The notes: generated by a model from the sequence alone, not told the origin. A stretch of 64,000 nucleotides of DNA from Macrostomum lignano (GCA_002269645.1 NIVC01001892.1:160570-224569), one strand, 5' to 3'; shown: positions 41,201-62,665, counted from the first letter of the stretch. Numbers and translations: made by a program.

Positions 41201-44200
41201 AAAAAATCATAATAAATATTAATACTTTTAGCATATGCGGATTACTATTAAATATATAATAAATATATTAATATATTAAATCTAATATAATATATTAAAT
41301 GTATAATAAATATATGATAAACATTAAATATATTATAATATATGAATATATTAAATATATAATAATATATAAATATAATATATTATATTAAATATATAAT
41401 AAATATTATTTTTATTTAATACATTAGTTAAGACTTCAGAATAGATAAGAGTTACATTAAAAGACTTAATACTCAAATATCAATATACTCAATAGTTCAA
41501 ATTCAATGTCACTGTGTGGCACAAGTACTGTGTGTGTGCCAGTGACAGTGACACTAACACTTAACAGGCAGTGAGGTAGGCAAGCAGGCACTGCGGTAGT
41601 GCGGCTGGCACTGGCAGTGGCAGTAAGCAAAAAGAAGAAAAGCTGAAGCATTAAGTGTAAGGCACTTGGCATTGGAAGCAGTAAGGAAGTAAGAACCAAA
41701 TCAATTGATTGATTCTTTTATTTGAATTTTTAGTTCCTTTACATAGCTTCAATATAAAGAGCCATGTACACAGTCAGTATTCAGTAAGACAACAAGACAA
41801 GACAACAGAACAGAACACAAGTGAAGTGACAACACAACACAACACTCAACTGTCTCAACAGAACAGGCAAACAGACAATGGAAATACAAGTAATTAGCTG
41901 ATACCTGCCTACCTGCTCACCTACCTACCTAAACGAATATGATTACGAATACGATACTGAGTCTACGACTACAACTACCTACGAATACAATACAAATATG
42001 AACACGATTACAAACTCTGATAGATAGCAAACTTCTTGGAAAAATGGTAGCCTTGGCCCTTAATAAGTACTTCTTGGAACGTAAATAGGAAATGTTATTT
42101 ACAAAAGCTTAAAAATGACAAATCAACTTTTTAAAGAATCATATTTTTGCTTTTAGCCTGCAGCCTGCAGCGTGTAAAGTGGAATCAATATTGCATCAAC
42201 TATGTTTTAATTTTATCTTCCTGGAAAAAATCCGATCTTCCTGGAAAGTGGAAACTGGCTGTGGCTGACGCTCACGGTCACAGACACTCACGCTTAGAGC
42301 CTACTACGAATCAATGATATTGCTACTTCACATCATATCATCTATTACTATTACTGCAGTCGTGCAGTGCTTGAGTCTTGAGTGCTGATGCAATGCTTAA
42401 CTGAGTGTTGTGCTGTGCTGTGAATAAAAATAATTTTATTCTTATTTGCACGCAGTTAGTGCCTTTAGGGAAAAAAGACTTGTCCCGATTTCCCGACTTT
42501 TTTAGGGTCGGGCCCGGGCCCGGGTCGGGCCACGATTTTGGTCGGGATTCCCGACTTTTCGGGCCCGGGCCCGGGACTGGGTCGCCCCCTAGATTTAACT
42601 AGCTATATACTAACTGTGATTGTTAGCCAACCGTGTTTTTGTGAACAGGGTTGTTGCCTCTCCTGCACCACGCAGAGGTCATCACAACGCAGGAGTGGGG
42701 ATCTGGATGTATGCAAAGTGACAATAATTACCCCAGCAAAGTATACAGAATTGATTTGCAAAGTGGGCAAAGTCACAGCAGTGAACCAGATCTTCTGCCA
42801 CAGCATTTTCTGCAAAGCGGCCAGTCTTGCAAAGAGACTGAGGATTGCTTTACTGAGTATAACATCAGTTAAGTTTAAAACAGACAGTTTTTTGGCTCTT
42901 TTAATTCGAATAGATGCATGCTTAACTATAGCGAAAAGCAGCCGAGCGGCCAAATAAACTGATAGTAGTCGGATTGGCTCTCGTCTCTATAGCTGAATGA
43001 GACATACCTGTTTGATTACTGTTAACACTTGAGACGCAGGCGTTAGTCAGTACAATAGCAGCTCCCTGCGGCTGCGCTTGCACTGTTGCACTGCTGTTTT
43101 CCATGTGAAAAAATTCTCGATAAGCACTGATTCCAGGTCCAAGCTCGTAGTTATCAAACTCATCAGGTTTGTCTGCCGGGATGTTCACTTCAGCACTCGT
43201 GGCTGGTGTTGCAGTAGCCGTGGCAGGTGTTGCAGTTGCAGCGGCCGTGGCAGGTGTAGCAGTTGCAGCGGCCGTGGCAGGTGTAGCAGTTGCAGCGGCC
43301 GTGGCAGGTGTAGCAGTTGCAGCGGCCGTGGCAGGTGTAGCGGCGCTCGAATGCCCTGCACTTTCAATAAGATCAGAATGTTGGTAATTGACAAATACCA
43401 GATCCGTATTTTCCAACTTTTCAACCAACTGAACACATTCCGCCCTGTTTAAATGATGGGGTGACTTGAAATCGAGAGAAAATCTTCCGCGTGCAAATCT
43501 GGTTTTGTTTCGCTTGTCACTCTCCATTTGCTTCCATGGAATCGGGCCTCTGTTTCCAGCTCTCTTGAAAGCAGTCGTTGCTTTCTCCTGGATTGACAGT
43601 CTCAGCTTCTTCACATCACGAAAAGCGTTGGAAGGTCCGGTAGCTTCAGCTCGAACTGATGCTTCTGTCGTAGCTTCCATTCGGGCTTGAGAGGCGATTT
43701 TTTCTTCTCGATAATATTCCTCTCCTTTCTTGATGATATCAGAAAGCTGTTTCACCGCTGCAGTTAATTCCTCTTGAACTCGGGAAGATACTCCATCAGA
43801 TACGTAACATTCGGGCATATCTGTTGGTATGGATGGAGGAATAACGACGCAGAAAGATTTTTGAGCTCGTTTCAAGTCGACCAGAATGCTGCTTTTAAAA
43901 TCTCTCGGACGATCTTTAGCCCTCTGCCTAAGAGCGTTTTTCTCGTCCTGCGTAAGAGCCTGGTATTCAGCCTTGAGGGCAGGTGTCCATTCTAAAAGTA
44001 ATTGTGGAATGTATGGGATATACAGGAATCGTAGATTCAGATTCAGACGGACACACAGAGAGACAGACAGACGGACAGACAGACAGACGGACACTCTGAC
44101 AGACAGACACTCTGACAGACAGACACTTTGACAGACAGACACTTTGACAGACAGACAGACAGACAGACAGAAAGACGGACAGACACTCTGACAGACACAG

Positions 44201-44237
44201 ACAGACAGACAGACGGACAGAAAAACAGACACACTCT

Positions 44238-44279
<42 letters not shown>

Positions 44280-44959
44280 AAGACAGAAATACAGACAGAC
44301 AGAAAGACAGCCATACAGACAGACAGACAGAAAGACGGACAGACACTCTGACAGACACAGACAGACAGACAGACAGACACTCTGACAGACAGACAGACAG
44401 ACAGAAAAACAGACACACTCTGACAGGCAGACAGACAGACAGACAGACAGAAAGACAGAAATACAGACAGACAGAAAGACAGATATACAGACAGACAGAC
44501 AGACAGAAAGACAGACGTACAAACAGACAGACAGACAGACAGACAGAAATACAGACAGACAGACATACAGACAGACAGACAGAAAGACAGACATACAAAC
44601 TGGGTTTTTTTCGTCCATAACTTGGGTGCGATTTCGCACCCTGTGCTAGATTTCAGGGTGCGATTTTCAAGACCAGAATGCGCTGCACTGCTGCAGACAA
44701 AAACTTGCAAATATTTGGGTGCGCTTTTTGCACCCTGAGTCAAATTTCAGGGTGCGATTTTTAAGACCAGGATGCTATTCGCACCCATTCGCACAAAAAA
44801 AACCCAGCATACAAACAGACAGACAGACAGAAAGACAGAAATACAGACAGACAGACAGACCTGAAATCTGGAATCTGAGATCTAAGATCTGAGATCTAGA
44901 TAACGAAGATATATATAGACAGATATATATAGACAGACAGAGAGACGGACAGACACTCT

Positions 44960-47190: not shown

Positions 47191-47687
47191 TCTCTCCGTA
47201 CTCTGGCCCGAAGTCATGCGCTAAGTTGTCAATCTAGCCCTTGACGGCTTGAAGTAAAAATTTTGCCGACGTCTAAGTTAATGAACAAACAAACTGAAAC
47301 AAGCAAGGATCTATAATGACACTTACCTTCTGCGTTGACTCGAAAATAGACGCCTAAGTAGAAAGTGTAGAAAAAGTGAGAGTTGAATTAGAAAATTAGA
47401 AAGAAGTAAGAAAATTATTTAGTAAGAGAGCGTAGGAAGGAAACTGAGTTTCAGTTGCAAGTGTTTAGAGTTTAGACTGGAGACTGCAGACTGCAGAGTT
47501 AGAGTTCGACGAGCTTTCCAACCGGTTCAAATCGGTTTATACTGGACAGATTGCTTTGTCTGCTTTCTGGGAATTTTCCACTCCCCATTTTCCATTACTG
47601 TTGTTTACGGAAAGTGGGGGAAAGAAACTCCGTGCACTTAGAGGACAAGTGAGTTCGCATCTCCTCATCCAATGGCAGCTCGCTATT

Positions 47688-50635
47688 CTCTTCGGTGGCA
47701 GAGGAATAGAATAGAATAGAATAGAATAGAATAGAATAGAATAGAATAGAATAGAATAGAATACAATAGAATAGAATAGAATAGAATAGAATAGAATAGA
47801 ATAGAATAGAATAGAATAGAATAGAATAGAATACAATAGAATAGAATAGAATAGAATAGAATAGAATAGAATAGAATAGAATAGAATAGAATACAATAGA
47901 ATAGAATAGAATAGAATAGAATAGAATAGAATAGAATAGAATAGAATAGAATAGAATAGAATAGAATAGAATAGAATAGAATACAATAGAATAGAATATT
48001 CTTGGATACTGCACTGTCTAAGAAGAATTATTTATTCTTTTTTCTCTTTAGACTGTTATTTTTGGCTGCTAAGAAATTATTTTACCTCGCGTACTTCAGC
48101 CGCACTACTAAGTAGTGCAAAAAGGATATGAAAGGTAGAATCGTGTTTTATGCGCATAGCGAATGACTTTGCGACTGTCAATACACATTACTGGACTGGT
48201 CACCAGAGGAAATGTGCTATAGCAAATTATCTATGCAACAAACATACTGCGCGAGAACACACTGCCCTTCCATGGGGGCGCTGTATTTGGGAGTGCTGTC
48301 TTTGGGTGGCGCTTGATCTCGCCACACTGATTTTGGGCGAGATTCTTACCAGCCCTCTGAGATCCGCCCTCTCTCCCCGGATTCACCCAGCAGCGCAAGC
48401 CGGTGGTGGGCAGCAGGAGGCCATCGGGCTGCAGAGGCCCCAAACCGGAGCCCCACAGAAGCTGCTGCTCTTCGGTGGCAGAGGAATAGAATAGAATAGA
48501 ATAGAATAGAATAGAATAGAATAGAATAGAATAGAATAGAATAGAATAGAATAGAATAGAATACAATAGAATAGAATATTCTTGGATACTGCACTGTCTA
48601 AGAAGAATTATTTATTCTTTTTTCTCTTTAGACTGTTATTTTTGGCTGCTAAGAAATTATTTTACCTCACGTACTTCAGCCGCACTACTAAGTAGTGCAA
48701 AAAGGATATGAAAGGTAGAATCGTGTTTTATGCGCATAGCGAATGACTTTGCGACTGTCAATACACATTACTGGACTGGTCACCAGAGGAAATGTGCTAT
48801 AGCAAATTATCTATGCAACAAACATACTGCGCGAGAACACACTGCCCTTCCATGGGGGCGCTGTATTTGGGAGTGCTGTCTTTGGGTGGCGCTTGATCTC
48901 GCCACACTGATTTTGGGCGAGATTCTTACCAGCCCTCTGAGATCCGCCCTCTCTCCCCGGACTCACCCAGCAGCGCAAGCCGGTGGTGGGCAGCAGGAGG
49001 CCATCGGGCTGCAGAGGCCCCAAACCGGAGCCCCACAGAAGCTGCTGCTCTTCGGTGGCAGAGGAATAGAATAGAATAGAATAGAATAGAATAGAATAGA
49101 ATAGAATAGAATAGAATAGAATAGAATAGAATAGAATACAATAGAATAGAATATTCTTGGATACTGCACTGTCTAAGAAGAATTATTTATTCTTTTTTCT
49201 CTTTAGACTGTTATTTTTGGCTGCTAAGAAATTATTTTACCTCGCGTACTTCAGCCGCACTACTAAGTAGTGCAAAAAGGATATGAAAGGTAGAATCGTG
49301 TTTTATGCGCATAGCGAATGACTTTGCGACTGTCAATACACATTACTGGACTGGTCACCAGAGGAAATGTGCTATAGCAAATTATCTATGCAACAAACAT
49401 ACTGCGCGAGAACACACTGCCCTTCCATGGGGGCGCTGTATTTGGGAGTGCTGTCTTTGGGTGGCGCTTGATCTCGCCACACTGATTTTGGGCGAGATTC
49501 TTACCAGCCCTCTGAGATCCGCCCTCTCTCCCCGGATTCACCCAGCAGCGCAAGCCGGTGGTGGGCAGCAGGAGGCCATCGGGCTGCAGAGGCCCCAAAC
49601 CGGAGCCCCACAGAAGCTGCTGCTCTTCGGTGGCAGAGGAATAGAATAGAATAGAATAGAATAGAATAGAATAGAATAGAATAGAATAGAATAGAATAGA
49701 ATAGAATACAATAGAATAGAATATTCTTGGATACTGCACTGTCTAAGAAGAATTATTTATTCTTTTTTCTCTTTAGACTGTTATTTTTGGCTGCTAAGAA
49801 ATTATTTTACCTCGCGTACTTCAGCGCACTACTAAGTAGTGCAAAAAGGATATGAAAGGTAGAATCGTGTTTTATGCGCATAGCGAATGACTTTGCGACT
49901 GTCAATACACATTACTGGACTGGTCACCAGAGGAAATGTGCTATAGCAAATTATCTATGCAACAAACATACTGCGCGAGAACACACTGCCCTTCCATGGG
50001 GGCGCTGTATTTGGGAGTGCTGTCTTTGGGTGGCGCTTGATCTCGCCACACTGATTTTGGGCGAGATTCTTACCAGCCCTCTGAGATCCGCCCTCTCTCC
50101 CCGGACTCACCCAGCAGCGCAAGCCGGTGGTGGGCAGCAGGAGGCCATCGGGCTGCAGAGGCCCCAAACCGGAGCCCCACAGAAGCTGCTGCTCTTCGGT
50201 GGCAGAGGAATAGAATAGAATAGAATAGAATAGAATAGAATAGAATAGAATAGAATAGAATAGAATAGAATAGAATAGAATAGAATACAATAGAATAGAA
50301 TATTCTTGGATACTGCACTGTCTAAGAAGAATTATTTATTCTTTTTTCTCTTTAGACTGTTATTTTTGGCTGCTAAGAAATTATTTTACCTCGCGTACTT
50401 CAGCCGCACTACTAAGTAGTGCAAAAAGGATATGAAAGGTAGAATCGTGTTTTATGCGCATAGCGAATGACTTTGCGACTGTCAATACACATTACTGGAC
50501 TGGTCACCAGAGGAAATGTGCTATAGCAAATTATCTATGCAACAAACATACTGCGCGAGAACACACTGCCCTTCCATGGGGGCGCTGTATTTGGGAGTGC
50601 TGTCTTTGGGTGGCGCTTGATCTCGCCACACTGAT
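47688..50635. repeat. ~575-bp satellite, 4 full + 1 partial units, each with a variable (AATAG)n block
   Basis: Repeated ORF starts at 48150, 48730, 49305, 49874 and 50454; each unit begins CTCTTCGGTGGCAGAGG(AATAG)n. Confidence 0.95.
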
Positions 50636-50929
50636 CCATTGGCACTGGAGTTATCGCAGCTATTCTTAACAAAATAACTCAGGTTGAAAGAGATCTTGCA
50701 GAGTGGATCGCGAATAATATATATTTGCTACTTTTCCTCTGCAGTGCTTGAGGCTCTAGCTTAATCAGCTTTCCAGATATTCAATGGCGGAGATTCCGAA
50801 AAATTCTAATGTATTCAAATGGGGGAATTCGGGAAAATCAATCAGGAATTGCCAAGCTGTAGTAATAAACTCAGATTTGAGATTCTACAGATCATTAGAG
50901 CGTGCCAGTCGGTGTCTTCCGCAGAATGA

Positions 50930-51172
50930 AGGTTCTTGGGTCAGGATAGGAGATTCTTGGGTGAGGCTATTCTTGGGTCAGCATGGAAGATTCTTGGGTC
51001 AGGATAGGAGATTCTTGGGTGAGGCTATTCTTGGGTCAGCATGGAAGATTATTGGGTCAGGATAGGAGATTCTTGGGTGAGGCTATTCTTGGGTCAGCAT
51101 GGAAGATTCTTGGGTCAGGATAGGAGATTCTTGGGTGAGGCTATTCTTGGGTCAGCATGGAAGATTCTTGGG
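50930..51172. repeat. 58-bp repeat x4 built from three ATTCTTGGGT subunits
   Basis: Visible period of 58. Confidence 0.9.
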
Positions 51173-52104
51173 TACTGACACTTCGATGACATGTTTTATC
51201 AGTTTGAAGAATACCTTGCACGGCTTTAGACTCAGTTTTCGAGCTGGTATCTAAGCACAGTCTCATTCAAGCTGTAGTTAAGCCAGTATTATCTTCACTT
51301 CAGCAGCGCATACAACTTATCCGATTTCAGTGGCGTCCTGGTTCATTTTGCCCCTACTGAGCGGTGGAATCTCCATTGCCCTGTTCTACTTTATCCAGGT
51401 CTTCATCCTTATACTAAGGTGATTATGTAAAGCTTTAAAAATGTTTACTTTTAATTTGTGATTGTGTGCACAAGCGCGCACTAGCAGAGGCGCACACTGG
51501 CAGAGGCGCGCACCGGCACAAGAGCGCAGCAGCACAAGAGCGCACTGGCAGAGGCGCGCACTTTTGACACGCTGTAGCATAAGCGCGCTGTCTGTCTGTC
51601 TGTCTGTCAGACGGCATGTCTGAGAGAAACCCTACAAACTGAAACACACAGGGAAGGCAGAAACAAGTATTTGCAGAATGCGAGTAAAAACAGACGCCAG
51701 CCTATAAATTGGTCCATAAAATATTTCTTTATATTGTTTGTCACAGATAAGACGCCCAAGCTAATTACAAAAAAACAGCCGCAAAAAAGATTAAGCTGAA
51801 AATTGTCTGCCCAACCAAATTTAAAAACTGTTAAAAGACCAACAATTAAAGTAATAAAGTTGAAGAGAAAAAATACAATAGTAGGCACTATCTACTGCTA
51901 TAGGTAAAATTAAACGAGGCACTGATAAGAAAACGATAAAAAATATTTTACGAGCGTACTACCAAAGCGAGAGAAAAGTGAGGGATGGAAAAATAACAGA
52001 TAAAATTGAAAAAGTCCATAAACAGACCGACACCGCAGATAATAGTTAAACAGCTACAACTAGCTACTTAAGGACAGTAGTGCAAGCGCATGCTAGTGCA
52101 GTTT

Positions 52105-53598
52105 TTAAATAATCGACGAATTCAGCCGGAAATTCGGCTCCGAGTTCAGCTGCTGGTGACCAGACAGTGTGGCGTCGAATTCGCCCTCGTAATCTTCGTC
52201 ATCGTTATCCACTTTGACATCAAGATCGAGGTCGTCCTCGGATTTCGGATCGGCGGAGGCCTGCAGGTTAGGGGTGGCGACCGAGTTTTTGAAAGGCCAT
52301 TTGAGGACAGGGAGATGATGATAAATGAGGTCATTCAAGGATGAGGAAATATATGCCATGAAAGGTCGATATTTAGGGACACGGACAGGGGTCATGTAGG
52401 ACAAGACAAGGGGTTATTTAGGGACATGAGTATTGGTCATTTAAGGTCACAAACATCATGACGGTATCACATGTTTAGTTGCACGCATATAAAGTGGTGA
52501 GTCATACATTAACATGGGTTGATAAAATTTCCCAGCTCACCGATCGATTATAGCCTAGCCGGGAGTCGGTCTCGCCGTCTCGACTATCGTCGTTGCCCCC
52601 AGCCAGCGATGCGGCTAAACAAGCGGCCACATCGAAGGCGGTTGTAGCGGCAGCAGCGTTAGCAGCAGTCCTACTACCCATAGTATTGCTGCCTAACACA
52701 GCAGCGCCGGTAGTATTCGCCAGTGGCAAATAAATTTTTCTAGCCACCACCGTCTGCTTCTGCTGCTGCTGCTGGCTGTCAGAGCCGGTCGCTCCCGATG
52801 CCGGGTATCGCCGACGGCCGGAACGGGCGCGCAGCTGCGGCTCCCCTGCACTCAGGCGTCTCTGCGCGAGAGATAAGAATAGGAAAGGGGTCAAATGAGG
52901 ACAATAATTCTAAGCAGAGGTCATTTCAGGACAAAAATCAACCCTGGGGTCAGTTGAGGACAAAAGTCTACCCAGGGGTCATTTGAGGACAGAATCTATC
53001 TGGAGGTCATTTGAGGACAAACTAATATACGTAAAGATCATTTGAGGGCAAACATCTACCGTGGGGTCATTGAAGACAGAGGTTATTTGGGGCAAAAAAA
53101 GTGCGCAGGGGTCAACTGTCCTTACCTGGCCAACAGTTGTGACGGCGGCGGCGGAGGCGGCGCACCACCCCGTCGGAACAAGGCGGCAGCGTCAGCGCCT
53201 TTGACAGTCGCCGATTGGCCCGCCTGGGTCGGCCGCCGAGATCGCCAAGACTGGGCGACATGGACGACGCCTGCTCCGTCGAAGACTGCTGCGGCAGAGT
53301 TGTTGTTAAAGAGTCGGTGGCCATCGACGCGGCAGCGGCGACGGCGGCTGCGGCCGTGGCGTCGAGTAGAGGCTGGTCCAAGACAACGGCTGCCGACAGC
53401 TGCTGGCGAGAGCAGACGGCTCGACTCGAAGGCTCTGCTGGCAGGCGCGGCAACAGCGGCGCCGAATGATGAAGCGCAGTTTAGCCGAACGATCGCGCTC
53501 CGCAAGGACCTGCAATTGCAGCTGCATGCGAAGATTGGTCAGGTCCATCTGGAGGTCGTCCACACGATGCAGGCGTTTCTCGTAGTGCTGCCGAATCT
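52105..53598 (-). CDS. MAP3K13: 3' exons of a dual leucine zipper kinase (MAP3K12/13, DLK/LZK/wallenda family); kinase exons not in window
   Basis: The exon starting at 53598 encodes IRQHYEKRLHRVDDLQMDLTNLRMQLQL versus recalled DLK [28 protein letters not shown] (14/28 identical). Further phase-0 exons lie at 52541-52861 and 52105-52260 (acidic SEDDLDLDV...YEGEFD, stop). The splice path through 53126-53510 is unresolved. Confidence 0.7.
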
Positions 53599-53952
53599 CT
53601 GGGGGCGAAAGAAATGACAAGAGACTGTTAGGCGGCAAACAAGGACACAGGACTTCTAGAGGTTAAAGGACACAAAAGGTCTCTTAGAGGTCGAATGAGA
53701 ACACAGAACTATAAGGGTAAAATGAGGACACAGGACTGTTAGGGGTCAAATGAGGACACGGGACTGTTGAGGGTCAATTGAGGACACGGAGCTGTTATGG
53801 GTCAAACTAGGACACGCGGGGACTGTTGTTGTGATAAGTTTTTGCATCATGTAGCAAACAGACCATGGCACATTTGCACTAATGCACCATATCTAGACCA
53901 GCAGTATCTGAAATAGAAGCAAAAGCCATTTATAAGATAATATACATGTAGG

Positions 53953-54244
53953 TCAGTGAAGCAAATATCTAAAATTGTTAACAGAAGTATAAAAGAAAAA
54001 TGAACAAGAAAAAATGGTGCTCAGTTAGCCGATTCTAAAAGTGAATCGTGGATCCCCTGAGCCACGAAGAGGCCGAACACCGTTCAGGGGGTTAATCCAT
54101 AGTTCACTTTGCAGAGCAAAACAAATTCCACAGCACAGTAAACAGTGCACAGCGGTCTTTTGCAGCATTGAACTAAGGATCAATCCCGCCACTAAGAGCG
54201 GGAAGCCACAGCAAGAAATGCAAAGCGGCCAGCTTTTTGAAAGC
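53953..54244. repeat. 292-bp direct repeat, copy 1
   Basis: Identical by eye to 57933-58224 (offset 3980); starts TCAGTGAAGCAAATATCT, ends CTTTTTGAAAGC. Confidence 0.95.
54016..54090 (-). ncRNA. HDV-like self-cleaving ribozyme candidate, copy 1
   Basis: Minus strand: P1 CCCCUGA/UCAGGGG, P2 GGUGUUCG/UGAGCACC, P3 GCC/GGC, L3 UCUUCGU, P4 CGAUUC/GAAUCG, J4/2 GCUAA, in correct double-pseudoknot order. Deviations: C rather than G at +1, weak P1.1, one extra C before P2'. Confidence 0.55.
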
Positions 54245-54312
54245 CGATAAAATCTTATAGCGAACTCCCCATGCAACGGGGGCTGATGGTTTCAGAGAAT
54301 AAACTTAGCCTT

Positions 54313-56274
54313 TCAGTCTTTAAGCCACGGATGCAGTCGAAGCACATCCGAGCGCCTTTCTCCATAATCGTAGAGTAGCTCCTCGCCTCGAGCAATGTCT
54401 CGAATGGCTTGGAAGACCAGATGCGGTTTATTGTTTACATCAGCAACAATCGGCTTCAAGTTATTTCTTCGCCGGCTATGGTTAATGTACCGACCGACGT
54501 ACTGGAAAGTGTTGGTTGCGTCGATGCAATAAGCTTGATCTCGCCAGGAAAAGAAAAACAAGAAGCAGCATGGCTTCCCTTGCTTTACAATATCTTCCTC
54601 CCGGGCGAGGCGTGCTTTTTGTCCTTGGATTAATTCTCCACCGTAAGTACAGACGACAGTGCCTTTTGGGAGGTCCGTACGGGCAAATGCCCCCAGACCC
54701 TCTGCGTCGACGCTACCGGCCTGAACCACGACGTTGCCGGTAGAAATCATTGTCTGTCGAACCACATCGGCCATAGTGAGTTGCCTCATAGACGCCATTT
54801 CGGTCGGCAGGGATCGCTCTGGACTCCCACGGCTAGCTCGGCCGTGAGGCGTCACGTGAAGGAGCGGCGTGCATGCTCCGTCCGGAGTTGTGATAGTGTC
54901 CGGGACTAGACGCTCGCGATTAGCTGCCATTGCAGGAGGGGCAACCGCAGCAGCGTGGCTATTTGAGTCCTCAGGCGAAGTCACAGTCGGCTCGAAAGGC
55001 GGATCATTGGACAGGCCATCTTTATTGGCTTCTCCTCTTTGGAGCCGAACGCTAAGGGGAACCTGACAGTGAAGAAAATGAAGAGGACAAATGATTCATA
55101 GTGGTAACGGCATACAAATGCAGATTAACCCCAACGCTTTAATCTTTGCATTGAATAAACATGCAACAAAATTGTTCCTAAGAACACTGTTTCACACAAT
55201 AAACTGTGGACTTCATTTAGTTTGACCAACTTACTTCATTGGAGGTCGCCGGTACAGCGTCGGTAGATAAGGCGACGTCTATAGTTGCAGCAGCGGCAGA
55301 CTCCGGGACCAGAAGCTCGCGATTAGCTGCCATTGCAGGAGGGGCAACCGCAGCAGCGTGGCTATTTGAGTCCTCAGGCGAAGTCACAGTCGGCTCGAAA
55401 GGCGGATCATTGGACAGGCCATCTTTATTGGCTTCTCCTCTTTGGAGCCGAACGCTAAGGGGAACCTGACAGTGAAGAAAAAAGTACATCATAATGGTTA
55501 CAACATGCAATTAAAGATGAACGTAACCCTTTGTTATTTTCATTAAACATACATGCAACCCAGCTGATGGTAAGATAATTGCTCTACACCATAAACCATG
55601 GGCCAGCATAAAAGACCCCACCCCTTGTTGTTAATCCCTAATATTTCCTTTTGAGCAAAGTATCTAAAAGCTTTTATTTATTCATTTTTCACTTTCATCT
55701 TCTCAAATTTACCAAACATTCAACTTTTTAAGAAAAGTTGCGACCTGACCTGACCCGCGACCTGATGCTTTCAAGGTTACAGGCCGCAGCGTTTTAACAA
55801 CAAAAAACCATGGACACAAATTTTAGTTTAACACACCTCATTGGAGGTCGCCATTTCAGCGTCGGTAGCTAAGTCCGCGTCCATTGTTATAGCGGCGGCA
55901 GATTCCGGCAGGCTTTCAAGCGGCAAGGCTGGATTAAGATTTAGTTGAGGCCGGATGCCGTAAAAGGCCAACAACCGCAGGCCCTCAATTCTGTCATATG
56001 CCCTTGCCCTCGCATCAGCTACGGCTGCACGGCCGACAACAAATGCTTCGCCGAAATGGCACAGCCGCATGTGTTGTCTCATATTAGAGGCGGCAAATGA
56101 GCTGCACAGCTGGCAAAGCTTTAAATCTCTTTTGCCATGCCAACGTTTGTAGAGAATGTAGGCTTCGACTCGATCGTAGTTTGCTGTATGCTTGCTTCGA
56201 GCGTGTCGAAGGAGGGTGGCGGACCGATTGGTGGAATAGTCACACATCGGGCAAATAAACTGGTCAGGGTCCAT
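54313..56274 (-). CDS. C2H2 zinc finger x2 fused to PR-Set7/SETD8(KMT5A)-type SET domain, 3 exons, 472 aa
   Basis: Exons complement(55837-56274, 55235-55465, 54313-55062), all phase 0. Fingers CPMC-x12-HARSKH and CQLC-x10-HMRLCH. SET motifs GLGAFA, VCTYGG, YCIDAT, GRYINHS, GEELLYDYG, C-terminal HPWL match the SETD8 family. Confidence 0.85.
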
Positions 56275-56636
56275 ATTGAATTGATTCAAGTTTTCAACGT
56301 AAACGTTTAGAGTAAAATTTAGTTCTCGATAAAACGTGTCGCGCAAACTTTCTGAAAATGAGGAAAAATCAAAATGAAACCTTTAACTACGGTGAAAGAT
56401 GAATGAACTAGGCATCTTGGTAATAGGTACTTTACAATGCACTCTTAAAGACTGTCAGACTGAAAGCAAAGAAGGCATGTTCCGCTCGCTCGTAGTCTCA
56501 GGACAATAATAAAAGGCAGCTGAACAGATCAAATCAAATGTTTATTTGAAAGGTTGGGCGATACAACGGACTTGATAACGCATTACAGTCCCGAATTTCT
56601 GCATAGTAGCATTAGGTTGCCAGTCACACTGAAGTT

Positions 56637-57254
56637 TTAAAGCAAATCGAGTAGTGAAACGGAATTCGAAATTGTAGGATTTGCATTTTGTTGCAACGAA
56701 ACGCTGGGAGAAGCTGGATTAAAAAAGCCATTGAAATCATTGTCTAACGTAGTTACACTACAACTGTGGCAGGGGCATGTACAATGGCTATCAGGGCAAT
56801 TGAAAATGTTTGAACGTAAAACACTTGGACCGGAGAGCTGTGAATCGGCACACTTTTCGGAGGGGTTCCTGGCGGCTAGTGATTGCAGCTTAGAAATTAA
56901 AACTTCAGCGTTTTCTTTAGCCTCGTCTAAGTTATAGGTAGATTGCGAATTTCCATTTGTCTTAGATTGCTTTCCATGTTTTACCCTAACATGGCTTGGT
57001 AAATTCGAAGTGATAACACTGCAAACAGGACACTGATAGAGGTAACCCGATTCGGTTCGCTTCTTTGCCTTTAAAAGTCCAAAAAGGCGGATTGTGGCAT
57101 CAATTTGCTCTTCAGTGGCATCAGGGTGCTTTCGATTGCAATGTACCTTGAAACCAGATGCGCGTCCTGTCCAAGCATTGCAGATCAAACAGGAAATCTG
57201 CGTATGAACCTGCACCATGTGAGACATTGTCCCGCGGGTGACATTCAAGAGCAT
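56637..57254 (-). CDS. C2H2 zinc finger x2 protein (cargo ORF; start uncertain)
   Basis: CLIC-x12-HCNRKH and CPVC-x9-HVRVKH, followed by a Cys/His-rich tail. Stop at 56637 and AATAAA on the minus strand at 56541-56546. Confidence 0.65.
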   Translation of the reverse strand: MLLNVTRGTMSHMVQVHTQISCLICNAWTGRASGFKVHCNRKHPDATEEQIDATIRLFGLLKAKKRTESGYLYQCPVCSVITSNLPSHVRVKHGKQSKTNGNSQSTYNLDEAKENAEVLISKLQSLAARNPSEKCADSQLSGPSVLRSNIFNCPDSHCTCPCHSCSVTTLDNDFNGFFNPASPSVSLQQNANPTISNSVSLLDLL

Positions 57255-57932
57255 CGGGAAAACGTTGTGGGCTTATTATTATACTGCTTCCAGGGAGGTT
57301 AGGCAAATTAAGTCTTAATTTTTGTATTCTAAGACAATGACGGAGAGGAAATGCTTTAGAGTATAAAAAATTCTGAATCTCACATCTGAATCTCCTATCC
57401 TCTGATCGGAACCAGGTCTATCTTCCAACATGAACATCCTTTCCTCTCAACTGAAACCCTCGAGTCCGAGTCAATAAGGCTACAGGCCAAGCAGGGTGCC
57501 ATTAGTTAGTGTGGGCAGTTACATTTTCAATCTCCCCAGCCAAGCCTAAAGTGCTGCTATAAATGGGATAATGAGTGCATGGCGGGATGGGTCACTGCTA
57601 TTGCTTATGGTTAACACGTAACAAAAGTAAAAGACAAAAATGTGTATATCACGATTACTAGTTCCACTTTTATTATACTTTCGCGCTATCTTTGAAGCAG
57701 TATGCAAATATACTATTGGCATAGCGGGCGTCTAAACGCAGGCTAACATAAGAGAACTGACAAATTGCAGTGAGTGTCAAAGTGTAGTACAACGAAAAGG
57801 GACAAAAGTAAGACGCATATGCGCCTCTCGCTGCAACGACAGGCGACTGCATATAAATGCATGAAATATTAAGTAATACAAACGAGAGAATAAAACACAT
57901 TCAAGAAAGTTGCTCGTAGTTATAAATTTCAA

Positions 57933-58224
57933 TCAGTGAAGCAAATATCTAAAATTGTTAACAGAAGTATAAAAGAAAAATGAACAAGAAAAAATGGTGC
58001 TCAGTTAGCCGATTCTAAAAGTGAATCGTGGATCCCCTGAGCCACGAAGAGGCCGAACACCGTTCAGGGGGTTAATCCATAGTTCACTTTGCAGAGCAAA
58101 ACAAATTCCACAGCACAGTAAACAGTGCACAGCGGTCTTTTGCAGCATTGAACTAAGGATCAATCCCGCCACTAAGAGCGGGAAGCCACAGCAAGAAATG
58201 CAAAGCGGCCAGCTTTTTGAAAGC
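57933..58224. repeat. 292-bp direct repeat, copy 2
   Basis: Identical by eye to 53953-54244; lies 164 nt downstream of the transposase stop. Confidence 0.95.
57996..58070 (-). ncRNA. HDV-like self-cleaving ribozyme candidate, copy 2
   Basis: Same sequence and pairing as copy 1 (offset 3980). Confidence 0.55.
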
Positions 58225-58387
58225 TGAAATACTGCTTACTTTGGTAGGCTGTAAACTTTACAGTAAATTTCTAAGAGAAATCGGTATACGTTTATAAACT
58301 GGTTTAGAATTTCATGTAAACAAGCTAGTTTACATCCGAAATATGATTATCCTATGGATAACAGTTTCAAGTAATCGAGTTTCGGAA

Positions 58388-61178
58388 TTAAATACTATCA
58401 ATCCATTCTTCATCTGACTCAGACTGCTCACGACTTGATTCAACGTCTGAATGACTCGGGGCTTCAACGTCATCTGGCTGATTTACGTTGGTACCAGCGT
58501 CGTTTGGATGCTGCGCATCAGCAGCAGCAGCTTCAATGCTTGCGTCAATGTGATCAAAGCGAAGAGCTTGAAGTTGCTTTAAAATAGTCTGAAAGAGGCA
58601 TCGAAACTGGGCTGGCAATCCAGGTTGATGATGGAGTGTTTCACAGTGCTGTTCAAGTTTAATTTGAACGTCACGCCACTCTTGCACAATAATGATCTTT
58701 TCCTCCGCTAGACGATTCAGCTTGTGATACAAGTCAACCACCCGTCGCTTGAACCTCTCAGACACATCGATCGAAAGACCGAAGTAGAAGTCTGACTGGA
58801 AGTCGCGAAGCTGAATCATAGTGGGCACGCGAAGGCCTGGCGGAAGCGAGCGGGCGGCCATTCGAATGTCTGCATTTAAAGCCGCAACCTTGCGTAGACA
58901 TGCTCGATTTTCTTTTTGTCCATCTGAGCAGCCACTCTGACGGATCCAATAGAATCGTTCCAAAGCAAGTGCCTTAAGCTTTGCGTAAGGTTCCCTGCTC
59001 AATGGAGAGTCGCTATTGGGATTTATGGCTTCTGCATGCCATTGTTGAGCAAGATTTAAAATGGCTACCTCAGAGATTCCGGCAGGAATAGTTAATTTGT
59101 TGTTCCGCATCAAATCGCCAGCTTGTAGAAGCAATTGCTCCATTTCAGCTGAACAAGACGCGGCTGTGCGAGTTATTAGTTTTAATCGAGCAGAAAACCA
59201 ATTGGAGGCGTACAACAACTGATTAGCATTGAAGCAATGCAAAATGTAAGACATACAAGCACTTCTGCGATCGGACCGCATGTACTTTAAGCTTTTACCA
59301 AACGGTCGTAGTGCAGACCAAGCGCGCTCCGTATTCTCCCCGTCGCAAAGACCCGCTCCAGGAGTTACCCGCACGGAGTACTTTAGTTGGCATTGTCTCT
59401 CGTGGCCCAGCACATGAAAGGCGTTCACAGCGCACGTGACACTGTTAAGCTGTACACCAGATGCTGACACCATGGACTTGACACGATTGGAAATGCGACA
59501 ACCTGATTTTAGGAAAAAGTTTTTAAATGAATAAATAATTGAGCTTCGTGTCGCAGTACGCATGCACGTACATAAGTAAGCACAAGCATAAGTAAGCACA
59601 CACTATAAGTGTATAGTGTAAATAAGTGCAGCATGATAGAAACACGATAAAAATCAACTCACCAACATCATAGATAAAAATGAGATCCTTTGAGACGGGC
59701 TGTGTCATTAGGTAATGACGAAGAGTCTGTTCTGGATAGCACAGGCCCTCACCAGCTGTAATAATGTTGCAACCTGTCAGAAGCCTGTTATGCCGGCAAA
59801 ATAAGCCAAAGAAACCGTTGACATCGTGCTTGCTGGCCCTGATCACGGGTTTTTCTGTTCCAGCCTTCCAGTTAGTGCAGCCTTCTGCAGACACTTGTGT
59901 CGTAGGAGGCGGTACAGTTGCTGGTTCTACATGAATAAGCGGTGACGGCAATGAGCGTTCAGAATCTGGCACTAGACGTTGCTTCGAACCCATACTTTGT
60001 AGTCTTCGCCATCCAAATAGAGCATCAGCACAAACTACAGACTTCCGACTTGAATTTTGGTCAGGACACAAAAGACAACTAGCAGGCCAGCTTGCTGAAC
60101 ACCTCTGCAACTCTCGAAACCGCAGTAGGACTCCATTACGCTGCAATCTCTGATACACTCGATCGGCTAAACCAGGGTTCCAGCGACCTTGTCCTACGAC
60201 GGAGCCTTTGAAAAGACAGGTAATTGCACGAGACAGTGGCAGTTGACCGTCAAAGCACAAGGAGTCAAGAGTTGATAGAAAGCTAATTGAAAAAAATGTT
60301 AACAATTCGCCAACGCGTGACTCGCTTCCAGGAAAGTATCCTTTTGCTAGCATGGCATCAACTTTATCACAGGATTGGCACGTATAAATTCTGGCGCAAA
60401 CAATTCCGTTGATGTCAATAATCTGAATTTCGGATGATGTTGTATACTCAGAAGACAAGCTTGATTCGCTACAGCAGAATAGAGAGACAGGCTCTTCTTC
60501 TTGAATGTCTTCAAACATTAGCGATTGAGCCTAGGAAAAAGGGTTAAATTTTGTATGCGGTGTTATAAAAATATTATTCCGTACTAAGGCTATTAGCATT
60601 CTAAATACTTTTGTTTCACGTCAAATTTAATACAGCGTTATACTGCCAAATAGGCGTCATTGTTTTCTTCACAGTAAACTAATATCCTTAGAAATTGCAA
60701 TTTAGATTTTAAAACAACTTACATTCCACTGGAGGAACTTGTGAGCAGCAAAATTTCCATGCGTTATCTTTTTACAATCACTGCAGACATCGTACTGACA
60801 ATGAACACATCGGAAAACTCCAGGCTGCATGTCGCAACGAACACAGCATTTTAACTCGAATGACTGTTTATAACCGGCAGTGTAACTTTCCACAATGGCC
60901 GTGTAGTCTTCCCATTCCGTGAATTTAGGCGGCTGTTCAAACTTATTACTAATCTGTTCAGGCATAGAGTCATGGTTTCCTGCACCCAGATCTTGTGAAA
61001 GACTGCCGCCAGTGACTGTGGAACACGAGGAAGCCGTGGCAATCGATGTAGTACTTTCCAATGCATTAGGCGCATTAGACGTTCGCAATATCCTTGGCCT
61101 TCCGCGTTGGCCAGTCATCAGTACTACTTCAGATTGTCTTTTTCTCGATTTCGCATTTAGTTTTCTTGACGAAATCAT
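58388..61178 (-). CDS. KDZ superfamily (Kyakuja-type) transposase with N-terminal CxC zinc-chelating domain, 3 exons, about 812 aa
   Basis: Exons complement(60723-61178, 59663-60530, 58388-59502) join in frame (2439 nt). CCVRC..RCVHC..CSDC..H..H..W; IIDING..C..C..GYFP; CLLCP; VCADALF; GLFCRH; GEGLCY; YDVG|C; AFHVLGHERQCQ; GAGLCDGENTERAWSAL are KDZ signatures, with all three putative catalytic acids present. Confidence 0.88.
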
Positions 61179-62513
61179 TGCTGAAATTCGTGAGGATCAT
61201 TCTGAATTGTATATTACATCATATGCTAAGCTCAAAAGGTGTTTATCTATATCAGTGTCTTTTTAGAGCAGGTGCTTAGCCATCTGCTCAGCCACCTGCA
61301 AGGCAACCTGCTCAGGCATTGCAGCTCAGGCAGTGGCTGGCTTGGAGCATCAGCTGATTTGATTAAAGTTGATTAAAATCTAGCAGATTTATAGTCTATA
61401 ATTTGTTATCCATAGCCATATTGCATTGAGTTGTGTTTATAAGTATATAATAAGCAGCTTAAATTATTATTTGGTGTAATTGGGATGCTTTGGAATATGT
61501 TTTCTAAATTTTCCACTTCATCTTGTATTCTTGATTGTTGTATTTTCTTACAAGTCTTTTCTGGGTCCTTATGTCTATGAAAAAGGGTAGGCCTACCTGC
61601 ATATAGTGGCTCTTTGATTTTAATTTATAAATTTTAGATGTATACATTTTTTGTTTTAATAGTTGCAGTTTAATGAGCCACAACACAAATGCCCACAAAG
61701 TTTTTATCAGTTTTATTTTATTTGGAATATTCCAATAAATTATAATATATAAATATATATTATTTATCCTAACAAAAAGAATTCTATATGAATATTATAT
61801 TTACATATTTATAGTCACAGAATCATGCACTGAAAAAGTTCTTCTTAGGCTTGATAACAATATAGAAACATATAGAAACTAATAGATAAAAGTCTTAAAT
61901 AACATTTATCATTTTTGATATTCTGTTTTTTAATTTGACTAAGAACATCTAAAGAAATCATACTTTTTTATTAGAATATTTAAACTTATTTAAAGGCAAC
62001 AAAGGTACAAAAGAATAGGCAGCCTTATGGTCATAACATTATGGTTTTAACTTTTTTCTGTCAATTCACTAACTTTGAATTACCAATAGATTAAAAATTT
62101 AATAGATTATATGGCCATTAATGTTTATATCTAATTATGCAAATACTATAATTTTATCTATAGTTTGTTTCAATCTTCCAAAGCTTTTTATTTGTTTTCA
62201 AAAGGTACACAAAGTTAATGATGTCTTTTGCTTAAAAAAATGTCAATTTTTTATAAAAATAGCTTTTTGCCAACTGATATTATACTAATCCAACATTTTA
62301 CCATTCATTTTTGGCATTTGTTATTTGTCCAATGACTGGACAAATAGCCTTTTTGCTATTTGTCTGCTTAAATTGCTAACACAAGTATCTGTTTGTTTTA
62401 TGATGAATATTCTAAATTTTTAAGACCTTTTCTTGTATATTAATTAATATTTTCTTATATACTGTTAGCAAAGCAATGTATTCAATTTGGCATAATTTTG
62501 TATATAAGACACA

Positions 62514-62665
62514 CTAGTTCCCAGTGAGCTCCGCGAAACCCACAAACCCAAGGACACGCGCGAAGCGCGTGTCCTTGGGTTTGTGGGGTGAGCGGAGCGA
62601 ACGCGCGAGGCACAAAGTGCCGAGCATGAGGAACAAACAGCCAGCCAATGCGCGAAGCGCATTGG
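62514..62665. mobile_element. Helitron/Helentron-like terminus with GCGAAGC-loop hairpins
   Basis: CTAG at 62514-62517, a perfect 23-bp stem with GAA loop (62539-62587), a 5-bp hairpin (62609-62621) and a 9-bp stem with GAA loop (62645-62665). The class assignment is inferred. Confidence 0.45.

Follow-up and report, generated by a model that had tools for sequence, protein, structure and literature searches.

Do the two direct repeats at this locus encode RNAs that cut themselves, and what would such RNAs do just past the ends of protein-coding genes? HDV-like ribozymes are known from deltaviruses, retrotransposon 5′ ends, one mammalian intron and phages. The earlier note, working from a 64,000-nt stretch of Macrostomum lignano DNA (the window), placed a further pair on the minus strand of two 292-bp repeats, within what it called DNA-transposon cargo. 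With confidence a little better than even, we read three sites in the window, A, B and C, as genuine HDV-like ribozymes that are set in a hairpin module and putatively cut sense transcripts past genes.

The repeats themselves are as described: 53953-54244 matches 57933-58224 at every one of 292 bp (100% identity), and the 20-nt windows that flank them share just 10-45% identity, i.e. the flanks are unrelated. The 75-nt RNA quoted in the note is an exact minus-strand match at 54090->54016 and at 58070->57996, and plus-strand G54028 and G58008 do correspond to the C of its GCUAA.

54016..54090, minus strand: candidate HDV-like ribozyme A, 75 nt; aligns to RF02682 positions 1-74 of 74 (21 bits) and matches the descriptor
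57996..58070, minus strand: candidate HDV-like ribozyme B, identical to A; Rfam and descriptor matches
53953..54015, minus strand: tail of the 292-bp repeat behind A, a pyrimidine-rich tract ending UUUUAG, then 16 nt
42614..42695, minus strand: candidate HDV-like ribozyme C, 82 nt; RF02682 37.9 bits, descriptor match, covariation with A and B

The same tail follows ribozyme B at 57933-57995. Every helix that had been proposed for A and B pairs throughout: P1 over 7/7 positions, P2 over 8/8 including two G.U pairs, P3 over 3/3 and P4 over 6/6. The order P1-J1/2-P2-P3-L3-P3'-P1'-(P1.1)-P4-J4/2-P2' is found in A, B and C. Cleavage is predicted between 54091 and 54090 in A, with the minus-strand C at 54028 as the putative catalytic residue, and between 58071 and 58070 in B, with that at 58008. 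J4/2 reads GCUAAC in all three copies, which supplies the cytosine of the C-N-R-A pattern; CUAA is also the J4/2 of antigenomic HDV and R2. L3, closed by a 3-bp P3, is UCUUCGU with GCC/GGC in A/B and UCUGCGU with ACC/GGU in C, retaining the U...CG (equivalents of U20, C24 and G25) listed as an HDV-like feature (PMC6326823).

Three caveats attached to the original proposal are correct: position +1 is a C paired to G, P1.1 is weak, and one extra C follows GCUAA. In A/B and in C, this C1-G pair at the predicted cleavage site closes the 7-bp P1, and G1 is absent. P1.1 of A/B consists of one Watson-Crick pair (U-A) and a C.U mismatch. The classic descriptor demands G1 and a two-pair G-C P1.1 (PMC6326823), from which A/B deviate. 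A shifted, 6-bp register of P1 gave A/B no better P1.1.

The Rfam and descriptor searches that had been proposed as a check both match A and B, with Rfam scores that are sub-threshold. RF02682 (HDV-like) aligns end to end at all three sites, with 21 bits at A and B and 37.9 bits at C (E=0.002 for C over the whole window and all families), all below its gathering cut-off of 44 bits; the model derives from a single bacterial lineage, and P2 and P1.1 do not enter its score. At gathering thresholds, Rfam finds no match anywhere in the 64,000-nt window. RF02682 is the sole Rfam family match in 53500-58600 and the top match of the whole window. A generic HDV double-pseudoknot descriptor matches the window exactly three times, at A, B and C, the last as 42695->42613. 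Dinucleotide shuffles of the whole window, searched on both strands, gave 5 matches in 400, or 0.0125 expected per shuffled window, so the fold at A, B and C is beyond chance. Neither the strict nor the relaxed descriptor finds a further site in 241 kb comprising the window and loci L010-L020, mostly M. lignano contigs.

Site C lies elsewhere in the window and is a diverged homologue of A/B. It likewise has C at +1 and GCUAA, with the putative catalytic C at 42626, and its P1.1 is canonical with two pairs (U-A, C-G). The comparison of homologous copies suggested by the earlier note shows that, between A/B and C, both partners differ yet still pair at 13 of the 26 base pairs (two in P1, seven of the eight in P2, one in P3 and three in P4), a count drawn from just two different sequences, aligned by hand to the structure. 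In that alignment 96% of cells pair and no internal pair is broken, as against 34-47% paired and one to three double changes in slid controls. The unpaired core is kept, with L3 as UCU(U/G)CGU and J4/2 as GCUAAC. Near-identical copies at L011 and L018-L020 add no further covariation. Taken in aggregate, the Rfam alignment, the descriptor and the compensatory changes in copy C support the HDV-like double-pseudoknot reading.

The same data bear on whether the fold is catalytic. As an alternative, the structure could be conserved or merely inherited, either as a relic that has decayed or as structured RNA or DNA that serves some other purpose, and its likeness to HDV would then be of no functional consequence. 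Sub-threshold Rfam scores (21 and 37.9 against 44) and the departure of A/B from the classic G1 plus two-pair G-C P1.1 (PMC6326823) are compatible with this, and the near-identity of the copies could mean recent duplication rather than selection. Such a fold sits poorly with the 13 compensatory double changes between A/B and C, which leave every internal pair intact, with the presence of all descriptor-essential nucleotides (L3 U...CG; the J4/2 C in CUAA), and with natural ribozymes that share these deviations and are highly active (PMC13635239, PMC3185411). We consider a non-catalytic fold quite improbable.

If the units are catalytic, what they are attached to becomes important. Homologous sequence in A/B and C is found upstream of the cleavage site and goes no further than the 3′ end of the ribozyme, where the alignment to C stops and the tail behind A/B has no counterpart; tblastx and blastn comparison of the copy-C and A/B regions found no wider homology. 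The upstream homology corresponds to a structured leader.

54091..54245, minus strand: structured leader of unit A (RNAfold), with H0 (54245-54231), H1 (54230-54204), H2 (54203-54184) and a long H3 (54183-54092); H0 and H1 homologous to those of C
58071..58225, minus strand: structured leader of unit B, identical to that of A from 58224 down
42696..42840, minus strand: structured leader of unit C, with H0, H1 and a long H3 and without H2

The resulting module of ~230 nt contains H0, H1, H2 (in A/B only), a long H3 and then the ribozyme, such that ~150 nt of hairpins precede the cleavage site. The predicted fold of the unit A leader is -60.7 kcal/mol (z = -5.4). H3 closes 1 nt ahead of the cleavage site in A and 4 nt ahead in C; the predicted hairpin architecture is alike in A/B and C, but H3 does not keep the same base pairs. 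All three units share a discrete 5′ start. H1 of C is the same GGCCGC-UUU-GCA-loop-UGC-U-GUGGC hairpin as in A/B, and the 14-mer CTGGCCGCTTTGCA together with GCTGTGGC at fixed spacing is confined to the three units. An H1-type hairpin, CTTTGYA-N5-TGCTG, is also located 20 nt past the KDZ stop in L010, from another sample, where the KDZ gene is only 38-48% identical; this motif has no match in 184 kb of control DNA. Scans of viral and metagenome DNA with ribozyme-core or H1 patterns returned no relatives of the module, only three chance matches in bacterial genes of the metagenome.

The stems of H0 and H1 are kept with different sequence in C, as is that of H1 in L010, which favours a role at the RNA level over a promoter in this upstream region. 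A tRNA-derived SINE is also disfavoured, as tRNA-like sequences are absent.

Next, the position of the units was compared with that of the surrounding genes.

58388..61178, minus strand: B-box/CxC1/KDZ transposase gene (Pfam KDZ, CxC1, B-box)
54313..57254, minus strand: C2H2 zinc-finger/SET-domain gene, several exons (Pfam SET, zf-H2C2_5)
42922..43980, minus strand: unrelated ORF, no Pfam match, with its stop 81 nt before unit C
47288..62518, minus strand: multi-copy repeat unit of at least 15.2 kb, holding the KDZ gene, unit B, the zinc-finger/SET gene, unit A and satellite-like repeats

Units A, B and C are each on the strand of the preceding ORF and start 68-163 nt past its stop codon: 68 nt for unit A behind the zinc-finger/SET gene, and 163 nt for unit B behind the KDZ gene. 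The KDZ gene comprises ORFs at 61178->60702, 60518->59523 and 59599->58388, and its protein is 93% identical to M. lignano PAA74961.1. The zinc-finger/SET region is annotated as one SET gene in M. lignano contigs; GTAAGT donor sites are evident in the D6 repeat in this gene. When the SET ORF and the C-terminal KDZ ORF were put to word-indexed protein searches, nothing or distant bacterial SET proteins came back; M. lignano was reached by an exhaustive search of representative proteins. No AATAAA or ATTAAA occurs between the stop and unit A or B, or within 1 kb after A.

Splice-like sequence around the units raises the prospect of a CPEB3-type regulator, situated in a 3′-UTR intron or ahead of a trans-splice acceptor, in which cleavage would compete with splicing and thereby tune the flanking genes. 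The pyrimidine tract ending UUUUAG lies directly behind A and B, and GUAAG-like motifs are found 12-20 nt before units B and C; CPEB3 itself is an intronic HDV-like ribozyme (PMC4836649), and SL trans-splicing is widespread in M. lignano (PMC8629364). Yet the 3′ splice-like tract is missing after C, the donor-like motif is missing before A, the acceptor consensus of M. lignano is YTNCAG or CAG (PMC8629364) rather than UUUUAG, and motifs this short are common by chance. An intronic or outron role thus appears improbable.

The surroundings of A and B also address the suggestion of DNA-transposon cargo. In its favour, both lie inside the KDZ-bearing repeat unit, which is common to four M. lignano contigs at 98.8-100% and has end flanks that both differ from those of locus L020. 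Another four genomic copies carry units A and B without change. Copy C is outside the unit, and neither an inverted-repeat search nor comparison of the junctions with L020 found TIRs or TSDs. The near-identical copies could also be explained by the duplicated genome of M. lignano. More distant M. lignano KDZ families (L012-L017) contain no HDV-like match and no H1 motif, indicating that the KDZ transposase family does not require the module. Within the literature searched, a DNA-transposon-like element is a setting without description for this ribozyme class.

A retroelement could generate a related arrangement. In a ribozyme-bearing, retrozyme-like unit, the 3,980-nt RNA between the two sites would be excised, circularised and possibly copied back, leaving 292-bp repeats as LTR-like junction duplications and copy C as a solo or decayed unit; the ends would be 5′-OH and cyclic phosphate. 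Known retrozyme and Penelope-like repeats combine a hammerhead ribozyme, a short internal region, TSD/PBS/PPT and circRNA. The A/B repeats have instead an HDV-like ribozyme, a 3.7-kb gene insert and no TSD at their edges. That most known HDV-like ribozymes are in retrotransposons (PMC7761336, PMC3774820), that retrozymes place ribozyme-carrying direct repeats around an internal segment (PMC4918200), that the A/B repeats are 100% identical between unrelated flanks and that their discrete 5′ start is common to C are all consistent with such an origin. Set against this, there is no sign of a reverse transcriptase, poly(A) tail, TSD, primer-binding site or polypurine tract; the intron-containing zinc-finger/SET gene (3.7 kb) fills the space between the repeats; sequence is conserved ahead of the cleavage site and no further than the ribozyme 3′ end, the reverse of a 5′-ribozyme retrotransposon; and the arrangement is copied as a whole within DNA of 15.2 kb or more that also carries a transposase gene. 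A retroelement origin is unlikely. A 5′-terminal ribozyme of a non-LTR retrotransposon does not fit, as homology is upstream and the Pfam matches are to KDZ, SET and zinc fingers, none of them to RT.

Returning to ribozymes that cut sense transcripts past genes, beyond the sequence, fold, covariation, position and copy structure described above, we infer catalysis and, with greater reserve, a biological role. If A, B and C are active, the reaction likely involves: folding of the ribozyme during synthesis of the sense transcript, with H3 probably shielding it from upstream sequence; action of the J4/2 cytosine (54028, 58008 or 42626) as general acid; and cleavage directly 5′ of C+1. This would leave the upstream protein-coding RNA with a terminal hairpin and a 2',3'-cyclic phosphate, and would free the downstream RNA with a 5′-OH. 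In M. lignano, 30% of genes are trans-spliced and 15% are in operons (PMC8629364). In a host with polycistronic pre-mRNAs, the position of the units suggests a likely use in ending or separating transcripts of neighbouring same-strand genes. It would be unusual for an mRNA to end in a hairpin and lack a poly(A) tail, which counts against this reading.

A bolder and rather doubtful extension would make the module a portable cassette of hairpin cap and HDV-like ribozyme, with which the KDZ element and at least one other gene cut Pol II transcripts past the ORF, producing hairpin 3′ ends or splitting polycistrons without the cleavage/polyadenylation machinery. Two tandem cassettes could then free a 3,980-nt zinc-finger/SET RNA with ligatable ends, which might be circularised.

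The locus thus offers a covarying ribozyme family on the sense strand just past coding regions, fused to a hairpin leader, with two copies in a KDZ-bearing element. Should the ribozymes cleave, they would represent natural ribozyme-defined transcript ends or cistron separation in an animal and, within the literature searched, the first link of the HDV-like class to a DNA transposon. As a laboratory model, M. lignano is open to transgenesis, and tracks of RNA-seq, spliced-leader and poly(A)-end reads are public (PMC8629364), which makes the idea quickly testable, largely on existing data.

Among known systems, the L1Tc and R2/RTE-type 5′ ribozymes are likewise HDV-like folds in mobile elements, and the R2 consensus shows flexible helix lengths and a U where antigenomic HDV has C (PMC3185411, PMC3774820). 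In L1Tc, R2 and RTE, the ribozyme forms the 5′ end of the retrotransposon RNA and ORFs follow, whereas here conservation is upstream, and the element hosting A and B encodes a KDZ DNA transposase and no reverse transcriptase. The best-matching curated model, RF02682 (HDV-F-prausnitzii), has a similarly short P4. A looser core pattern applied to viral contigs recovered genuine but unrelated HDV-like ribozymes, used solely as comparators; these have A at position 1. One of them (L001, 68.6 bits) contains the GCCUCUUCGUGGC...GGCUAA core, its P3-L3 core GCCUCUUCGUGGC and CGGCUAA junction being identical to those of the units. Among the phage and giant-virus comparators, the ribozymes of viral locus L004 lie between tRNA genes; here they follow protein genes in a eukaryotic host.

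Mammalian CPEB3 resembles the module in having an HDV-like fold within a cellular protein-gene transcript and a weak P1.1, of one G-C pair plus U-U, which adds a further precedent for a weak P1.1 in an active ribozyme (PMC4836649). It differs in being single-copy, deeply conserved and intronic with G at +1, and is unrepeated, has no transposon link and does not lie just past a stop codon. The literature searched contains no example of an HDV-like ribozyme used for transcript 3′ ends. At MALAT1/mascRNA, an RNase P cut leaves a structured, non-polyadenylated 3′ end. The likeness to the module is of function alone, and putative here. By analogy, mammalian 3′-UTR hammerheads (cited in PMC7761336) may offer another parallel, as they also cut downstream of the Pol II transcript body, with a ribozyme of a different class.

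The HDV-like ribozyme of C. briggsae (crystal structures 22KX/22KS), a cellular animal ribozyme, shares with A/B the double pseudoknot, C at +1 and the make-up of P1.1 (U:A plus C:U), and cleaves at 9.3 per min (PMC13635239). The numbering of its catalytic C, 57 as against 63 here, shows that helix lengths differ; the text consulted describes neither conserved upstream hairpins nor a place 3′ of a gene. The L1Tc ribozyme of Trypanosoma cruzi is also active with C1 and a single-pair P1.1 (PMC3185411). These two precedents weaken the worry that C+1 and a weak P1.1 may cripple cleavage by A and B.

The window very probably contains a genuine family of HDV-like ribozymes, the best reading of three minus-strand sequences, given their predicted fold, their covariation and their conservation in all copies. 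The candidates (A, B and C) and the two genes interleaved with A and B are:

54090 to 54016, minus strand: candidate ribozyme A
58070 to 57996, minus strand: candidate ribozyme B
42695 to 42614, minus strand: candidate ribozyme C
61178 to 58388, minus strand: B-box/CxC1/KDZ transposase gene, first in order and followed by unit B
57254 to 54313, minus strand: multi-exon C2H2 zinc-finger/SET gene, following unit B and followed by unit A

Here, each unit consists of a hairpin leader with the ribozyme on its 3' side. The earlier note had described two identical 292-bp direct repeats, and the two blocks match exactly (53953-54244 and 57933-58224, 3,980 bp apart) between flanks that are unrelated (10-45% identity in 20-nt windows). 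The 75-nt RNA quoted there is present on the minus strand at A and at B, its GCUAA cytosine lies at plus-strand G54028 and G58008 as described, and every helix named is fully paired: P1 over 7 bp, P2 over 8 bp (two of them G.U), P3 over 3 bp and P4 over 6 bp.

Rfam at curated thresholds gave no match across the window. A permissive scan of 53500-58600 with 4,227 families returned two matches only, both to the HDV-like family RF02682 (HDV-F-prausnitzii); each covers the full model (1-74 of 74) at exactly the coordinates first proposed for A and B, with a score of 21 bits (E = 1.3), short of the 44-bit cut-off. Because RF02682 leaves the P2 and P1.1 pseudoknots unscored, a generic HDV descriptor was written, comprising: helices P1 (7 bp), P2 (6 bp or more), P3 (3 bp) and P4 (4 bp or more), with one P1.1 pair as the minimum; L3 as U...CG; and J4/2 as C-N-R-A. 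This search, suggested in the earlier note, matched three times in the window (A, B and C, all on the minus strand), and 400 dinucleotide-preserving shuffles of the window, searched on both strands, gave five matches in total (0.0125 per window); the descriptor was drafted after the candidate was known, so these figures are somewhat generous, its terms being nonetheless generic. Strict and relaxed forms found no further match over 241 kb, made up of the window and eleven comparison loci (L010-L020, mostly M. lignano contigs).

Copy C is the best match of the permissive whole-window Rfam scan (RF02682, 37.9 bits; E = 0.002 when calculated over all families and the full window). Its RNA reads CUCCUGC-G-UUGUGAUG-ACC-UCUGCGU-GGU-GCAGGAG-AGGCAA-CAACC...GGUUG-GCUAAC-AAUCACAG. 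Homology to A/B extends beyond the ribozyme: the 14-mer CTGGCCGCTTTGCA, with GCTGTGGC six bases on, forms a pair found at A, B and C only, and its spacing from the cleavage site downstream is similar in all three. The homology ends at the 3' end of the ribozyme. Directly after ribozyme C stands a G+C-rich palindrome (GGGCCCGGGCCCG...CGGGCCCGGGCCC, 42506-42582), which has several weak microRNA-precursor matches and resembles a small hairpin or MITE-like insertion.

A/B and C were aligned by hand, with N padding for explicit columns, and pairs were counted with the full pseudoknotted structure. The 26 pairs, in five helices, hold a standard pair in 96.1% of cells; the non-pairing cells are the terminal P2 pair in C and the second P1.1 pair in A/B. 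Compensatory changes, which the earlier note had sought among genomic copies, are present: 13 pairs differ on both sides with pairing kept (two in P1, seven of eight in P2, one in P3 and three in P4), a count drawn from two distinct sequences and from an alignment fitted to the structure. Controls in which the 3' partners were slid by 1-3 columns gave 34-47% paired and 1-3 double changes. The P2 pseudoknot, absent from the model that detected C, keeps its register with nearly every base replaced, and the unpaired core is common to A/B and C (L3, UCU(U/G)CGU; J4/2, GCUAAC).

In A/B, the 155-nt stretch leading up to the cleavage site is predicted to form four hairpins (-60.7 kcal/mol, z = -5.4):

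H0: small hairpin
H1: GGCCGC-UUU-GCA-5 nt loop-UGC-U-GUGGC
H2: hairpin between H1 and H3
H3: long imperfect hairpin, its base closing 1 nt before the predicted cut

The leader of copy C has H0 with another stem sequence, the same H1 hairpin with another loop, and a long hairpin closing 4 nt before the predicted cut, and is without H2; A/B and C differ in the details of pairing inside H3. The H1 core CTTTGYA-N5-TGCTG occurs in the window at the three units only and has no match in the control loci (184 kb). One H1-type hairpin (GCUCUGC-UUU-GUA-UUGGA-UGC-U-GCGAGC) lies at 2316-2350 of L010, a Logan contig from another sequencing run (SRR19430222), 20 nt past a KDZ stop codon; the KDZ gene there is only 38-48% identical to the one in the window. 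The hairpin has the architecture of H1 and its outer stem covaries; the contig stops 61 nt after the KDZ stop codon, short of any ribozyme position. In genomic HDV, an upstream hairpin beside the cleavage site can shield the ribozyme against misfolds that involve 5' sequence. Cleavage by the L1Tc ribozyme is likewise modulated by upstream sequence (PMC3185411).

The units start 163 nt (B), 68 nt (A) and 81 nt (C) downstream of stop codons. In an exhaustive protein search, the nearest relatives of the KDZ transposase are Macrostomum lignano proteins (PAA74961.1, 93% identity); the ORF before copy C is unrelated and without Pfam match. Upstream of the copy-C gene, 44000-44600 carries low-complexity repeats with (LSVC)n-like ORFs. 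The zinc-finger/SET gene has internal duplications, 54899-55078/55302-55481 (180 bp at 99%) and 55228-55306/55830-55908 (79 bp at 80%), which repeat an exon end (...ATSNE followed by GTAAGT) and part of the SET ORF N-terminus.

Contig NIVC01003083.1 matches 62518 to 52386 at 100% identity over 10,134 nt, which marks the window as M. lignano DNA, and the KDZ-unit-SET-unit order recurs in four contigs at 98.8-100% identity with the ribozymes unchanged. The window and L020 have a common block from 62518 to 47288 with both flanks differing. This places A and B inside a transposase-encoding unit that is at least 15.2 kb long and present in several copies. The earlier note had called them DNA-transposon cargo. 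Their position inside such a unit fits this, but neither TIR nor TSD was found by inverted-repeat search and junction comparison with L020. The M. lignano genome is duplicated, which could also give near-identical copies; cargo status is therefore probable rather than established. Copy C falls beyond the unit, 4.6 kb away, and the more distant M. lignano KDZ families are without the module.

Several repeats occur in and around this unit. Inside it, a satellite-like tandem repeat (47874-50635, period about 570-580 bp) has a microsatellite of (GAATA)n repeats within it (about 50208-50300) and varies in copy number among genomic copies. A 34-nt perfect-stem palindrome (62528-62598, 91% complementary, 3-nt loop) stands just outside the 62518 boundary, where the window departs from four other genomic copies. 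Elsewhere, a 27-bp unit forms a long tandem array (3670-5900, at least about 77 copies, 96-100% identity) that gives long spurious ORFs, and a 78-bp motif (38748-38825) recurs as a satellite of about 159-bp period in three comparison loci (L011, L013 and L018).

The favoured role is co-transcriptional cutting that would end or separate transcripts of adjacent genes, because the units lie on the sense strand, just 3' of ORFs, with a hairpin right beside the predicted cut, and because A/B lack a canonical poly(A) signal nearby: neither AATAAA nor ATTAAA occurs from the stop codon to the start of unit A or B, or in the 1 kb after A. The biology of M. lignano also favours it, since about 30% of genes are trans-spliced and about 15% are in operons (PMC8629364). 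The predicted ribozyme would cut the nascent sense transcript during transcription, leaving an upstream RNA with a hairpin end and cyclic phosphate and a downstream RNA with a 5'-OH. One alternative is that the two predicted cleavage sites, separated by 3,980 nt, define a retrozyme-like or circRNA unit. Another is regulation from within an intron or outron: a tract of pyrimidines ending UUUUAG lies directly 3' of A and B, but it is absent after C, and the M. lignano acceptor consensus is YTNCAG.

The earlier note had also given as caveats the C at +1, paired to G, and a P1.1 of at most one pair. The C is there, but A/B and C alike have it, making it a family trait rather than damage. The classic HDV descriptor has G1:Y and C-G/C-G at P1.1 (PMC6326823), and the viral comparator ribozymes have A or G at +1. 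Precedents for the deviations are: the active L1Tc ribozyme, which begins at C1 with a single-pair P1.1 (PMC3185411); the C. briggsae HDV ribozyme, with C1 and a P1.1 of U:A plus cis Watson-Crick C:U, the same make-up as A/B, whose cleavage rate of 9.3 per min puts it with the fastest of the nucleolytic ribozymes (PMC13635239); and CPEB3, whose P1.1 is one G-C pair plus U-U (PMC4836649). A viral HDV-like ribozyme scoring 68.6 bits has a P3-L3 core (GCCUCUUCGUGGC) and CGGCUAA junction identical to A/B. By analogy with these precedents and this shared core, the deviations are no argument against activity of the predicted ribozyme; a relic without catalysis remains the alternative. Among the viral loci, a giant-virus MAG contig (L004:7100-8600, IMGVR_UViG_GVMAG-M-3300023210-15_000001) carries about ten tRNA genes and eight RF02682 matches (27-43 bits), all on one strand, one between successive tRNAs, several with A at +1.

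A, B and C, with predicted catalysis, add a new member to the HDV-like class. The new elements are the composite hairpin-ribozyme module and its placement, 3' of protein-coding regions and, for two copies, within an element that carries a KDZ DNA transposase. Within the literature searched, no relevant report linked DNA transposons to HDV-like ribozymes or the KDZ family to ribozymes, and the one listed paper in which M. lignano and ribozymes both appear deals with another subject; function is addressable in this tractable model. Retrotransposon 5'-end ribozymes (PMC3774820, PMC7761336) have the opposite layout, whereas in A/B/C the conserved part is upstream, not downstream. Their idiosyncrasies place A/B/C nearest the C. 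briggsae and L1Tc ribozymes; by core sequence the nearest type is RF02682/phage.
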